NCBI GenBank assembly: GCA_038496445.1
Contig: JALMLS010000064.1
Location: forward strand, 372,001 to 436,000
Source: Trichosphaerium sp. ATCC 40318
Taxonomy: Eukaryota; Protista; Tubulinea
Length of the DNA: 64,000 nucleotides
Reading direction: 5' to 3'
The notes below the pieces were generated by a model that saw only the letters and a list, made by a program, of their open reading frames with translations, was not told the DNA's origin and ran no database searches. Shown here in pieces: positions 379 to 40,388 of the stretch. The stretch's first letter is position 1, and every line of letters starts with the position of its first letter. Position numbers and translations under genes: made by a program.

Positions 379-3300
379 TCACTTCAATAGATCGTCCAGA
401 AGATCATTTTTAGCCCATGTTGGAATAGTAACACGAAGCTTTGGGTTGCTTTCCATTGCCCTAAAGCAAGTATTACAAAAAATAACTTCACCAAAAAACC
501 AACTTACTTTTTGCATGCAAATTCAGCGTTGTCGTTACCAGACCAAGCACGTCTTGCTACTCCATTGTTTACATCCCAGAACAACATCTGAGTGGCTCTA
601 TCTAGTGCGCTATCAGACCCATCGAGAACAAGTCCAAAACCGCCATTCATAGCTAGTCCCCATCCAGTACCACCTCCCTTTAAAAAAAAGACATTAACAA
701 TAATGGTGTTGGGAAAACGCAACAATTAACGTACATTGTGAAGTGCGACCCAATCTGCACCTCTCATAGCGTCTCCAATACAATTCTGAACAGCCTAAAT
801 AGGTTTTAGTACAATGAAGCGAAATCGAACTATTGAGTTGATTTACCATATCAGCACAAAACTTGGAGCCATCTGTAATATTTGACGTCTCTCTGAACGG
901 ACTATCCGGATAATGTAAGAAGAAAGTTGTAGAAGCACATCCAAGTAATGTTAGAAAGTACCTATCAGTGCCGCTGACATCATGGTGATCTCTGCTAATA
1001 ACCACAGGCGCTTTTAATTTGCCTAACATAGAAAGATTACTAATGGTAGCTTGTTTAAAAGAAGTGCGAAGTGTACCGTCTCTGACAGCCTTATTAAAGC
1101 GTTTAGCTATTTCTACTCTTCCCTTACAGTCTGAGTATAGAATACGAGCTTGAGAACCAACAACAATATTATGCCTAAAAGCATTGTCAGTAACAATAAA
1201 AACTCACTTAAGTTTTTCGCAGTGAGTACTTTTCTGCTTCTGTAACCCATAATAGGTTATCCTTGTACTGCTGTTGTTGTCTCGGATCACTTTTATCTAC
1301 ATACATAATTAAGCCACGTACAAAGGTAATGTATCAAGAACATACCATGAAGCTCTCTGCACACTTCAGCAGCGATTTTATCAGTAAGTCTCAAATCATC
1401 AGGATCACCACTAGTACAGATCCCTACCGAATTTAAATACTCCAAAATATCATTAAAGATCTGACTTACATCTGAAAGGACCAAATCCAAGTGAGAAAAT
1501 ATCACCTGCGCGCAATTAAAACCATCAATCAAAAAGAAAAAAATTCCAAAAATGGGCTTTTCTTGGTACCCATGATATCTTCAACGTATGATGGGTATTT
1601 AAATTTCGCATCTTCTCCATGTTGCATGATATCAGCACCTGCAAGGCTCGCTTGGTACAAGCTAAATAAATATAAGCATTTGCAAAAATACGTAAACAAA
1701 ATATTACATACAAGGAGTTTCCGTAATCCCAGAACTTCATTCCGTCTTTGCATAGTGTATTCACAGCATTAACATGTCTCTTAAGTGAAGCTTTCACAGC
1801 TTCTCTATATTGTATTTTAGCCAATTGTGAAAGAAAGTAGAGTACAATCACATACTTGAATCCATTAGGGTTTTCAGCCATCATTTTATTGGCTTCATCA
1901 AAGGACATGCCCGCAGGGTAGTAGCCGCCATTGAAAGGGTTGTGTAGACTTGTTTGATCTGATCCTAACTCAATCTTTGTACCTTCTTTAACAAACTTCT
2001 CAAGCAAGTCCACGACGTTTCCCTTGTTGAAAACTTCAGAAAAAAAAAAAACAGAACGAGAAAAAAAAAAGAATGAGTACACAGTAGGCTATGCTTGTTG
2101 CTTTCTTCGCCTTCCTCGCATTTTCTATCATCTTCATACACGTATCAAGGTCATCAGTATGTTGTTGTACCCATCCTTGTTCATAACGCTTCTTTACAGC
2201 TCTAGGATCTACTTCTGCAATGACAGCAACACAACCAGCAATAACACCAGCCTAAGCACATTTAGATAATTTTCACCAGTTGGACTTCACCTTTGCTTGA
2301 GCACCAGACATGCCTCCTAACCCAGCAGATACAAACACTTTACCAGAAAGATCAGGGCTACCCAAATATTTTCTGGCAGCGTTCAAGATTGTAATAGTTG
2401 TACCATGAACAATACCTTGAGGACCGATATCTAGGAGAAAGCTATCAGCATGTTGAAAAAGATATGTGTTGTTGCTACGATTATTGAACGTACAGCAATA
2501 GCTTCCAGCAGTCATTTGACCGAACATTGATACTCCCATAGCGTACATACGATCATAGTCGAGTTGTGTTGAGAAATTTGGAATGACCATACCGTTGGTG
2601 ATTACAACGCTGAAACAATCTTAGAAATTGACATATTTTGTTCGTTCCAAAATAAAAAATCAGAAAAAAAGTTGGTACTGACCGTGGTGAGTGTCTGTTA
2701 CTCGGAAACAATCCTACAGGATGTCCAGAGTACCTTTGAGTGTTAATGAACCGTGTTCGACCACAAGGACGTACATTACAAGTGTCTGATCTTCAGTGAG
2801 ATCAGATAAGTACTTCATCAAAAGATGGTATTGAGCCCTTTATATCAAAATTAAAAAACAACAAAATAACATGTTTCCACGTACCAATTGGAGAGTACTG
2901 ATCCATTACCACCATAAGTGATGAGTTCTTGTGGGAATTGGGCTACACTATCATCCAAATTGTTCATAATCATGAGTTGAATAGCTCGGCCTAGTTTTGG
3001 GTTTTGAAAAACAATTTTCTTTCTTTTTACATTTTGAAGGATTTCTTTCTTTAAAAGTACCTATCGTTGTTTTCGCCGGATAGGCGGAGATTGGGTATGC
3101 TTTTAGCTTGTATTTAGGCATGAACCGATACATATAAACGTGTCCATAGTTTGTTAGCTCGGCCAAGAATTCAGGAGCAAGTGTAGCGTGTAGGTGTTCT
3201 GGAAAGTATCTCAATGCGTTTTTAAGGAGTTGCTAAGGCTACATGAGCGGTAATAGCCAAACTTGTAACGTCACCTTTGTTTCTTCCTTTGTCAACTTTA

Positions 3301-7238: not shown

Positions 7239-9950
<2,712 letters not shown>

Positions 9951-16391: not shown

Positions 16392-16777
16392 AAACAATAA
16401 AAATAGATAGTTAAAAAACAAGCTGTGCAGTTTCCCTACAAACTTCTCTTTTACATGTATTCGATGAGCCATGTACCTTGTTTTTTCAGCTTAACCTAAT
16501 TAATCATCTTCCGTTTACCAGTGAGTCGAGATGTTCTTCCTGCATGAATAGTGTATTGCGAACTGTTGAAGCAAAGAACAATAAAAAATCTGTTGGTTTT
16601 TTGGTAAATGCTACCTATTTTCGCTCAAGAGTTATGAAGTCGATACCCTTTCTGGAGTTCGCAAAGATCGCTGTAGGACAAGTTTGACTATTCAAGAACT
16701 CAAGCGTGCATTGCTTGGTAACAGTACTGGAATACACGCTCGCTATGATAAATGAAAATGAGGTAAAGGAATATGCT

Positions 16778-18599
16778 TTATTTCTTGTTCATCTTTTGCT
16801 CTTTGGGTGTGTCGAATATGCACTGATCCAAGGTAGCTAAGTATCCTTCATAAGACACTTTCAAATCTTCCTCTTTTACAGGAATTTTAAAGTAGTGCTT
16901 GAACGCTTGAGCAAAGAATGCTGGTGGAATACATTTGAAATCATAGGTGAATTTTGTCAAATCGGTAACATCCGTGAACAACTCTTTTACAAAGAATGGT
17001 TGATCTCCAATTACTGATAATTTAAATGCTGATATACTCAAAGGTATTTTTTCTTTTTCAGGCATAACATCAAGTCCTTTCTTAATCCTTAAAAAAACAT
17101 ATAAATAAGAAAGCAAGAAGAAAGATATTTGCTTGAAAAAAAAAACTGAAAAAAAAATATATCACGTGCTTTTCAGTGTCTTCTACGATTGTCTCGGTAG
17201 TTGTTTCGATAATAATCTCATCGTTATTTATACACACTACATTGTCGAAGTCACAAAGCTTAAAAATTTTATTAGCAATCACGTGACGTTGACATGTTTT
17301 CTTTTCAAAAAAATAAAAGTACGCACTTTATTATCGAGAAGGTACTCATACACTTTAGATGTCAAATGCTTCACAATGATATTACCTTTTGTTGTTTTAG
17401 ATTAATTAACCAAAAATACAATTTAAGTATAGTAGAACGTACAGCGCTTGTTATTGAGACTTCCAATGATTATTTGACGAAGGTACTTACTTTTTCTCAA
17501 GTACATAAATTCAGTAAACTTTGACATTAATTCTTCCCAACTAGTACATCCAAACACAAGGTTTGGAGAATAGTATCTCAATGCAGTAAAATTTGCGCTT
17601 TTGATGTCTACTGAAATGTAGTACTTGTCTAGACAACAAAGTTAAGAAAACATAGTTTGACATTGTAAAAAAAAGCTGTAGTTCGTACCGGCATTGCCTA
17701 TTTTGTAGACTGTTTTTCCTCTTGGACGATTATGTTTAGGTTCAAGTTTATACTCTTTAAATTCATTCTTTCTTTCAGTAAAGAGTGCCCACTCTGGTTG
17801 TTTTTTTATAGCATCGCTAATCTTGTACTTAACCTTTCGAAAAAAACAGTTAGAAGTAATAACACAAAACTAAACCATAAGCTACACTGTGCTTTAAAAA
17901 TGCACGTGTATCATTAAAGTAAATTCAACAGCTATCTAACAACGTACTGAATCTTGGGTTTTATGAAACTTTGACGATCCACCAGCTTTCTAAGAGATTC
18001 ATTAGTTAAAAAAACACGTGATAAGATGGAGGTTGTGCGTACTTTGAGGAACTCCAAAAGCCATTCATACTTTTGTTTCGTATTCAAAACATTGTCGTAC
18101 AAGTTAATGTAGTATGAGAAGAAAGGTTCTTGGATAACAGCTATGGGAATCGAGAAATCCTAAAATACACTTAACAACGAACACAAACTGTTATAACGCA
18201 CTCTTGTAAATCGTTTTAATACGCCTGTAGATAGCTGTACGCCAATATCTTCCTTTATAACGTGAGTAAAAGTAAACTTGTATTGGGCGTACCTTTACGA
18301 CTACAATACGACGTAATTGGTATTCCCCTACGCTTTTGGAGAATAAACCAAGCGTTTCAGCTGTTAACAGTTAAGTTAAACTGAATTTGTTGTAAAAACG
18401 TTTCTATTTTGTACCAATTTCATGTATGACTCTCCTGTCTTCACCGCTAAACTCAGGGCTAAATTTGTACTCAGTTTGATCTGGGTCTTCTTTAAACTTC
18501 TTTAATATAGCGATAAACGCTTCCTTATCCTGTGTTGGACCTAAAACAAGTTAGAATTATAACTAAAAATAGGGTAGACGGACGTAGTGCTGTTGTCAT
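16778..18599 (-). CDS. R3H domain fused to an uncharacterised domain with polymerase-palm-like motifs (multi-exon)
   Basis: Spliced product includes FSGEDRRVIHEIAETLGLFSKSVGEYQLRRIVVVK (R3H, RxxxH), YISVDIKSANFTALR, TSWEELMSKFT, KSKYLRQIIIGSL and VVCINNDEIIIE; all junctions are GT-AG and in phase. Confidence 0.8.
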
Positions 18600-18886
18600 G
18601 TTTAAACACAAAACTATGATATAATGTTTATCGAAAAAAAAGAAAGCGTTAACCATTCTTGTAAAATTCTCGACATCAACCGGGGTTACATACAGTGACA
18701 TGCTTTACGTTTACCTTGTTTTCGTTGTGTACACAGTTTTCCATTTTACAGTAAAATAGTTTCATCGAATCGTACATTTTTAACAGTAGTTTGTGCTTTT
18801 ATTATTGTGGAGTTGTGTTTTGTTATTATGTGAGTTATATTACAGGAAGCAGGATGCAATACTACGAGCTAATGTTGTGTGGATAT

Positions 18887-39551: not shown

Positions 39552-40388
39552 TTACAAGTCAAATTGTATCCTGTGTCTTTTCCTGATATATTCCACTACA
39601 TGAACATGGCTGTCACGAGCAGCCAAGTCTAATCCATTTAGTCCGTCATGATCCCTAATATTCAAGCTAGCTCCATTTGATAATAAAAGTTGAACACAAT
39701 CTAATCTCCCTTCTTCACAACAAAGCATAAGTGCTGTTTTACCATCTTCTTCATTAATATCATTAATATATACACCTTCCCTAATAGCAAGCAATGTCTT
39801 TTCTTTACACTGAAATAAACCTTCTGCTCCAAAGAGTTCTTTAGAGAACAACAAGTATAAAAAAACTCTTGGATTGTTTATATCACATCCATGATCTAAA
39901 AGAAGTTTCATTCCTTCAACAGTACCATGTAATGCTGCTTTTAAAATAAGGCTATCAGTTAAGTGAGGTAACACGTGTTTTCTAGATATTATAGCTCTTG
40001 TTTTTGATAAGTCTTTCTTTTCAGCATAATTAATAAGAAAAGTTAATAGAGGGATATCATCACAACCACAAGGTATGCTGTGCCATACACCTGGTTTATC
40101 TTCACTAATACTCCAAAATATATCAGCCCCATCGTCCAGAAACGTTTTTATTAGCGAGAAACCTCTTTTTTTCATTTCTTTGTCTGTTGAAGTAGCTGTA
40201 GCGTGTATAAGGCATACAAGGATAGAGCCTTGACCGAAAAGGTAGTTTGGATCTTTTACGTTCTCGTAAAATGTTTCATAGTGATCTATGCGGTGTAAAA
40301 GCATTGGCGTGAATTGTTTGCCATTCTTGAGGTTTAATTTAAACTCTGAGTCTTTAAATTCTTCTTTCCCGCTGTCTTCACTTGTCAT
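39552..40388 (-). CDS. Intronless ankyrin-repeat protein (278 aa)
   Basis: Single ORF; DGKTALMLCCEEGRLDCVQLLLSNGASLNIRDHDGLNGLDLAA and LLLDHGCDIN. Confidence 0.9.
   Translation of the reverse strand: MTSEDSGKEEFKDSEFKLNLKNGKQFTPMLLHRIDHYETFYENVKDPNYLFGQGSILVCLIHATATSTDKEMKKRGFSLIKTFLDDGADIFWSISEDKPGVWHSIPCGCDDIPLLTFLINYAEKKDLSKTRAIISRKHVLPHLTDSLILKAALHGTVEGMKLLLDHGCDINNPRVFLYLLFSKELFGAEGLFQCKEKTLLAIREGVYINDINEEDGKTALMLCCEEGRLDCVQLLLSNGASLNIRDHDGLNGLDLAARDSHVHVVEYIRKRHRIQFDL

Follow-up and report, generated by a model that had tools for sequence, protein, structure and literature searches.

What does the ten-intron, minus-strand locus of Trichosphaerium sp. ATCC 40318 at 16778–18599 encode, and on which nucleic acid would its product act? 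The window analysed here is the whole 64-kb stretch of contig that contains this locus. A preliminary description, made from the sequence alone, had proposed an R3H domain fused to a polymerase-palm-like domain, forming a small stand-alone palm-fold enzyme without an exonuclease that would perhaps act on RNA or ssDNA ends. We lean slightly towards the complete explanation, in which an R3H domain is joined to a compact palm polymerase acting on RNA ends, with both substrate and activity being inferred.

The R3H-polymerase gene is real, spliced and expressed. The gene model was built by three-frame reading with choice of GT..AG borders and was then compared with transcript evidence, namely spliced contigs from public runs placed on 16600–18800. 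It comprises 11 exons on the minus strand (18599..16778), with 402 codons plus a stop encoding a protein of 402 aa (Table 1). All ten introns (40–114 nt) are supported by the spliced contigs, with exact joints for introns 2–5 (18360/18415, 18252/18293, 18159/18202 and 17989/18043) and introns 6–9 (17833/17948, 17628/17689, 17385/17443 and 17258/17327), while for intron 1 a loose contig end at 18540 bears the ATG exon with a 3-nt difference. Nine introns start with GT[AG]CG or GTCCG, unlike the GC..AG intron 10. Because one contig joins exons 1–4 and another joins exons 3–7, the R3H domain and the catalytic part lie on a single transcript. Intronless phage homologues are collinear with window residues ~78–402 without a large gap, which independently validates eight exons. 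This whole-protein collinearity and the 746 protein clusters found with exon 8 alone (see below) place the evidence for a real gene far beyond chance. The last exon is the only one visible as a long ORF (16778–17116), as had been stated in the preliminary description, and no second copy of the gene was found within the window. A variant transcript in one public run, with GCA missing in exon 1, G>A at 18446 and G>T at 18484, may represent a second strain or allele expressing the gene. Elsewhere in the window, exons matching urocanase, an AAA+ lid domain and ankyrin repeats (1528–2082, minus strand; 8307–8915, plus strand; 39555–40388, minus strand) form ordinary eukaryotic surroundings, and GC content is even (34–40%).

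Table 1 Coordinates of the R3H-polymerase gene and its features within the window.
Feature	Position	Strand	Details
Exon 1	18599-18584	-	
Exon 2	18540-18415	-	
Exon 3	18360-18293	-	
Exon 4	18252-18202	-	
Exon 5	18159-18043	-	
Exon 6	17989-17948	-	
Exon 7	17833-17689	-	
Exon 8	17628-17443	-	
Exon 9	17385-17327	-	
Exon 10	17258-17170	-	
Exon 11	17087-16778	-	
Intron 10	17169-17088	-	82 nt, GC..AG; contig joint 17086/17169, one ambiguous base
R3H domain	18293..18540	-	residues ~9-70, exons 2 and 3; RRVIH (R-x-x-x-H) at 18436-18422
N-terminal helical part of phage-like module	18043..18252	-	exons 4-5, LKRFTRDFSIP...EPFFSYY; F85 and I91 nearly invariant
Motif A-like strand YISVDIKSANF	17620-17588	-	S194, D196 (17608-17606), A200, N201 (17593-17591)
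Motif B-like fingers helix KSKYLRQIIIG	17494-17462	-	K236 and R239 invariant; Q240 and G244 nearly invariant
Motif C-like hairpin VVCINNDEIII	17240-17208	-	D283 (17222-17220), E284 (17219-17217)
Last-exon C-terminal part	16781..17087	-	beta-rich, thumb-like; D374 (16867-16865) nearly invariant

The N-terminus of the protein is an R3H domain by signature, profile and fold, the last being assessed on a homologue. Pfam PF01424 matches two exon pieces with adjoining parts of the profile (9–37, 19.5 bits; 41–60, 13.7 bits), and these split scores total ~33 bits against a cut-off of 26.8, although this is a sum of pieces and not one score. The R3H domains of the homologues exceed the Pfam cut-off, with 28–54 bits. 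In a model of the Arcella homologue, the domain superposes on the R3H domain of Smubp-2 with Z 10.2 and rmsd 1.6 (60 aligned residues, 37% identity).

The catalytic part belongs to a large, unnamed and apparently undescribed polymerase-like family. An exhaustive phmmer search with exon 8 alone retrieved 746 clusters at 50% identity (E ≤1e-3) among 1.84 billion representative proteins, and a word-based search yielded 1236 proteins. By tblastn, exon 8 also matched phage ORFs, including those of the gut phage scaffold MT835533.1 (46% identity, E 3e-13), Salicola phage SCTP-2 (gp208) and a 642-kb phage. Other routes were less productive: the last exon gave only chance matches by tblastn against phages and no usable match in an ESM Atlas feature search, and single-exon searches of viral contigs found nothing, whereas an alignment-based scan did find loci. 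Scans of the exons and homologues against Pfam, PHROG and NCBIfam returned nothing apart from R3H, and the homologues are named ‘hypothetical protein’ or ‘R3H domain’ in their sources. No description of the family was found in the literature searched, though a prior mention cannot be excluded.

Conservation across 117 diverse family members, aligned with a mean column identity of only 18%, is concentrated at a few positions. D196, N201, K236, R239 and E284 are invariant (117/117), the motif C Asp (D283) is present in 116/117, and S, A, T, Q, G, the second D and the C-terminal D are each found in ≥90%. The window protein retains every conserved residue (S194, D196, A200, N201, T217, K236, R239, Q240, G244, D283, E284 and D374). 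Together, D196, the D283-E284 pair and K236/R239 form a residue set typical of two-metal nucleotidyl transfer, an activity inferred here without biochemical data.

Fold predictions were made on homologues sharing 31–35% identity with the window protein, and not on the window protein itself. AlphaFold models were obtained for P0194, the closest homologue (Arcella intermedia transcriptome; 35% identity over the whole length; pLDDT 96.5, pTM 0.88), and for the phage member P0032 (pLDDT 97.4, pTM 0.92). Both contain a palm of the order beta-alpha-(fingers)-beta-hairpin-alpha-beta, in which the fingers interrupt the fold behind strand 1 and precede the hairpin. A strand ending in the invariant Asp leads to helices bearing the conserved K, R, Q and G, then to a hairpin that turns at D-E, and finally to one more helix and a sheet. 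In the P0194 model, strand E172–178 ends at the motif A Asp, the motif B-like helix spans residues 217–225 and the motif C D-E lies at the turn between strands 253–256 and 260–265. Most matches in the fold searches are polymerases. The top 50 Foldseek rows of the phage member against the PDB consist entirely of polymerases and the PolB-like HSV UL8 (best E 1.6e-3, TM ~0.3, probabilities mostly 0.9–1.0), and the first 11 rows of an exhaustive VIA search are ten family B polymerases and UL8. This member aligns with Pol alpha over 250 residues spanning residues 1–313 (Z 9.5) and with RB69 gp43 over 267 residues, and the R3H-bearing model gives the same picture (Pol zeta, Z 8.5, 248 aligned). Family B ranks first, followed by the Y-family, GGDEF and family A. 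In the full-length alignments with family B polymerases, the last-exon part superposes on their thumb side. That the two Asp residues are neighbours in three dimensions is an inference, implied only by the ranges over which the models superpose on Pol alpha and KOD. On these models of homologues, a right-hand polymerase fold class is very likely, being well supported by the palm layout, the carboxylates and the basic fingers residues, and the catalytic part is predicted to be a whole small polymerase module with a helical N-terminal part, palm, fingers and thumb-like sheet.

Most claims of the preliminary description are upheld by these results. The peptides RRVIH, YISVDIKSANF, KSKYLRQIIIG and VVCINNDEIII and both Asp codons were correctly placed on the minus strand, the fusion of R3H to a polymerase-palm-like domain is supported by transcripts, Pfam and homologue models, and, as far as sequence comparison and homologue models reach, the proposed palm fold, the conservation of both Asp residues and the presence of the two domains on one transcript were each borne out. 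The proposal of a small stand-alone palm-fold enzyme holds only in part, the module being a full small polymerase rather than a palm alone.

Two alternatives concern whether this fold works as a polymerase at all. The protein could be a catalytically dead polymerase relic that, as with herpesvirus UL8, now serves to scaffold or to bind nucleic acid. In favour of such a relic, UL8 is among the top Foldseek rows, and relatives with two domains seem to retain the motifs in one copy only. We regard it as very unlikely, as 117 diverse members show little or no variation at the candidate catalytic residues, all of which the window protein keeps. Alternatively, the module could be a palm enzyme that does not extend primers, either a GGDEF-type cyclase or signalling-nucleotide synthase or a Thg1-like 3'-5' adder. 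GGDEF domains do match the palm (Z ~7 over ~120 residues), an Asp-Glu pair is also found in Thg1, and the solved structure of the Smubp-2 R3H domain (2lrr) contains a 5'-mononucleotide. Against this reading, family B polymerases align along the entire module, with both fingers and thumb-like part covered (250–267 residues); Thg1 is not among the top structural rows and occurs as a separate neighbour gene in one phage locus; and no Pfam match to Thg1 or GGDEF was obtained. A non-primer enzyme is thus unlikely, and an active palm polymerase remains the likely reading, in the absence of biochemical data.

Membership of the established families was evaluated directly. The family profile had no significant match among PDB sequences, the weak match to Aquifex Pol I (E 0.83) covering exactly motif C. 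With hhalign, nothing was found against the single sequence of T7 gp5, and the probability against that of phi29 gp2 was <1%; these comparisons used single sequences, without deep polymerase profiles. Family A membership was rejected, with no significant profile or sequence match and neither DYSQIELR nor RxxxKxxxFxxxYG matched. Family B membership was likewise rejected, with DxxSLYPS, KxxxNSxYG and DTDS unmatched and no Pfam PolB match, as was Thg1 membership, with no match to PF04446 or PF14413 and no Thg1 in the listed structural rows. For GGDEF, no Pfam match was found in the exons or homologues. A 3'-5' exonuclease domain is absent from the window protein and the phage forms, as the preliminary description had it: the phage forms begin at the helical part (exons 4–5), without R3H, and the window form has R3H instead. 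As a mere curiosity given the probability of <1%, the S-K-Y-x-R-Q helix motif of the family aligns locally with K-Y-L-R-Q of phi29 gp2 (L093, 1148–2863, minus strand; residues 480–495).

Phages, giant viruses and amoebae all carry conserved members of the family. The suggestion of the preliminary description that similar proteins occur in giant viruses and phages is confirmed by tblastn, IMG/VR and BFVD. At least 180 phage copies are present in IMG/VR, and the 80 retrieved copies lie on contigs mostly of 25–480 kb (few <15 kb), with none (0/80) bearing R3H. The phage ORFs are intronless and encode 302–328 aa, and R3H-bearing family proteins have 365–425 aa. Two R3H forms were found on intronless, gene-dense contigs, likely of giant-virus style, with genes for an aminoacyl-tRNA synthetase, RasGEF, DHFR-TS and PTH2 nearby. 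BFVD contains relatives in Klosneuvirus, Barrevirus, Hyperionvirus, Clandestinovirus, Pandoravirus, Moumouvirus, Tupanvirus and Medusavirus, and three amoebozoan relatives were found in transcriptomes (Arcella, Rhizamoeba and Soliformovum). The R3H fusion is therefore common to giant viruses and other amoebae and not special to the Trichosphaerium genome. In quick trees, giant-virus-like and phage rows form two clades, each with 99% SH-aLRT support, and the amoebozoan rows, including the window, fall between them, the window pairing with Arcella at 81%; the direction of transfer is not resolvable from these trees.

Several variations on the basic architecture were observed among the relatives. 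The Medusavirus relative (BFVD A0A3T1CWG1, 695 aa) is annotated as a DEDDy 3'-5' exonuclease, the polymerase module seemingly being fused to a proofreading-type nuclease. Five relatives of 649–888 aa (P0121, P0122, P0127, P0128 and P0136), some with R3H, have two exon-8 matches, and in a simple motif scan they carry only one intact set of catalytic motifs, suggesting an active and a degenerate copy. The contig of one of these, P0121 (locus L094), is giant-virus-like and also carries genes for PP2C and dynamin. The same WD40/PROPPIN-like gene follows the R3H-polymerase gene on the two giant-virus-like contigs L004 (10001–12239) and L009 (10001–12265), in apparent conserved synteny.

Phage gene neighbourhoods bear on the substrate. 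Among non-redundant phage loci, RlaP lies directly upstream of the family gene in 31/46 and a CCA-adding enzyme directly downstream in 36/54; both neighbours were also seen in one 206-kb phage. Packing is tight, with overlapping stops and starts (usually 1–4 nt upstream and 7–23 nt downstream). The remaining phage neighbours comprise T4-type and Rnl2-type RNA ligases, PTH2, a kinase, a metallophosphatase and DHH/DHHA1 phosphoesterases. No replication genes recur beside the phage gene, and tRNA genes were found near only 1/35 phage loci, which lends no support. As a side observation, a DHH/DHHA1 phosphoesterase occurs in 10/87 scanned second neighbours, following the CCA-adding enzyme where inspected (for example at ~7250–8200 in L025, L033, L035, L038 and other IMG/VR loci), and genes for ADP-ribosylglycohydrolase, Sir2 and NAD salvage also lie near IMG/VR loci. 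According to a 2025 preprint, damaged RNAs receive 1–2 NMP at their 3'-OH from RlaP, which is also required to restore heavily damaged tRNA (bioRxiv 10.64898/2025.12.29.696909). In a survey of jumbo phages, the enzymes named as restoring nucleotides during RNA repair are RlaP, the CCA-adding enzyme and Thg1, and the present family goes unmentioned (PMC7824862). From this context we infer that the family supplies one more enzyme for restoring RNA ends.

The main competing explanation, which is possible and still open, holds that the protein serves repair, gap filling, translesion synthesis or accessory replication as a small DNA polymerase, with R3H binding ssDNA. In its favour, the best structural neighbours are DNA polymerases of family B, then of the Y-family, the Medusavirus relative carries an exonuclease fusion, and an NAD-dependent DNA ligase gene lies ~6 kb from the family gene in one phage. 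Against it, the immediate, translationally coupled neighbours act on RNA in most phage loci, replication genes do not recur there, and the steric-gate site is Asn rather than Tyr, Phe or Glu. On balance, RNA seems a modestly better candidate than DNA as the substrate, and the preliminary proposal of action on RNA or ssDNA ends remains inferred on the RNA side.

In the RNA-end reading that we prefer, the R3H single-stranded nucleic-acid-binding domain would be coupled to a compact (~325 aa) right-hand polymerase without exonuclease that adds nucleotides to a 3'-OH, an activity inferred without biochemical data. The inference that the enzyme probably uses ribonucleotides rests on the invariant Asn201, which occupies the position five residues after the invariant D196 (Asp+5), the site of a bulky steric gate in three other polymerase groups. 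This position is Glu in family A and Tyr/Phe in family B and reverse transcriptases, where it forms the gate against the 2'-OH (Klenow D705/E710, RB69 D411/Y416, MMLV RT D150/F155). The probable substrate, again inferred, would be broken RNA and chiefly the ends of tRNA, given that the phage gene is packed in a tight unit between RlaP and the CCA-adding enzyme. One task could be to refill, guided by a template, the trimmed 3' strand of an acceptor stem ahead of RlaP action and CCA addition, with R3H holding the RNA end in the eukaryotic and giant-virus forms. On the giant-virus contigs, the R3H form lies near an aminoacyl-tRNA synthetase gene or PTH2. The specific role in refilling tRNA ends is an inference that we put forward tentatively, considering it rather less probable than its absence.

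Several points weigh against this main reading. Structural scores are middling (Z 8–9.5) and no sequence-profile link to any polymerase family was obtained; the closest structures are DNA polymerases, and the Medusavirus relative has a DEDDy exonuclease. A fusion of exonuclease and polymerase is the classic layout of DNA polymerases, and R3H also binds ssDNA. The operon evidence, moreover, comes from phages and not from the eukaryote. A bolder reading, to which we give distinctly less than even credence, is that these are miniature rNTP-using polymerases for the templated rebuilding of damaged tRNA and RNA 3' ends with a history of phage origin: phages would have invented or spread the RlaP / polymerase / CCA-adding repair unit against RNA-cutting defences of the host, and a later R3H fusion would have been kept by giant viruses and amoebae.

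If active, the enzymes would be among the smallest right-hand polymerases, and A, B, Y and RT would be joined by a new family. Their position between RlaP and the CCA-adding enzyme would then add a polymerase step to RNA repair, for which the adders discussed in the jumbo-phage survey are of the Pol-beta and Thg1 types only (PMC7824862). We regard the finding as an apparently new family of a known type of enzyme, newly connected with RNA repair in a way that can be tested. Although abundant, with 746 clusters at 50% identity, the family has no name. It provides a clean case of one enzyme common to phages, giant viruses and amoebae, with ten introns gained in the eukaryotic copy. A compact polymerase with Asn at the sugar-gate site may also be of practical interest.

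Comparison with known systems places the two halves of the protein differently. The ‘R3H domain protein’ of Klosneuvirus KNV1 (A0A1V0SKG9), like others of giant viruses, corresponds to the whole protein in fold and in the arrangement of its two domains (Foldseek E 5.6e-26, TM 0.74); these giant-virus forms differ from the window gene in being intronless and viral, in forming their own clade (99% SH-aLRT) and in being annotated by their R3H part only. The N-terminal 60 residues resemble the R3H domains of Smubp-2, SPAG7 and PARN in fold and signature, but in those proteins the partner of R3H is a helicase or nuclease, whereas here it is a polymerase-like module. RlaP (PF10127) and the CCA-adding enzyme, operon partners in phages and probably members of a common pathway of RNA 3'-end restoration, are nucleotidyltransferases of the Pol beta type with an unrelated fold, and hence partners rather than relatives of the window family. 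With family A, the window family shares the resemblance of its D-E hairpin to the HDE hairpin, and with reverse transcriptases the spacing of motif A (D-x-K-x-A-x-F). Both groups are present in the fold-search lists, but the scores do not reach significance, and the window family differs from them in having Asn at the steric-gate site and much shorter fingers. Family B (Pol alpha core, RB69 gp43, archaeal PolB and E. coli Pol II) provides the best structural match over the whole length, with the same order of a helical part, an Asp-bearing palm strand, Lys/Arg fingers helices, an acidic hairpin and a thumb-side part. The window family differs from it in size (~325 aa versus 570–1200 aa), in its motifs (S-x-D-x-K-x-A-N-F and D-E versus DxxSLYPS and DTD) and in a phage neighbourhood of RNA repair rather than replication.
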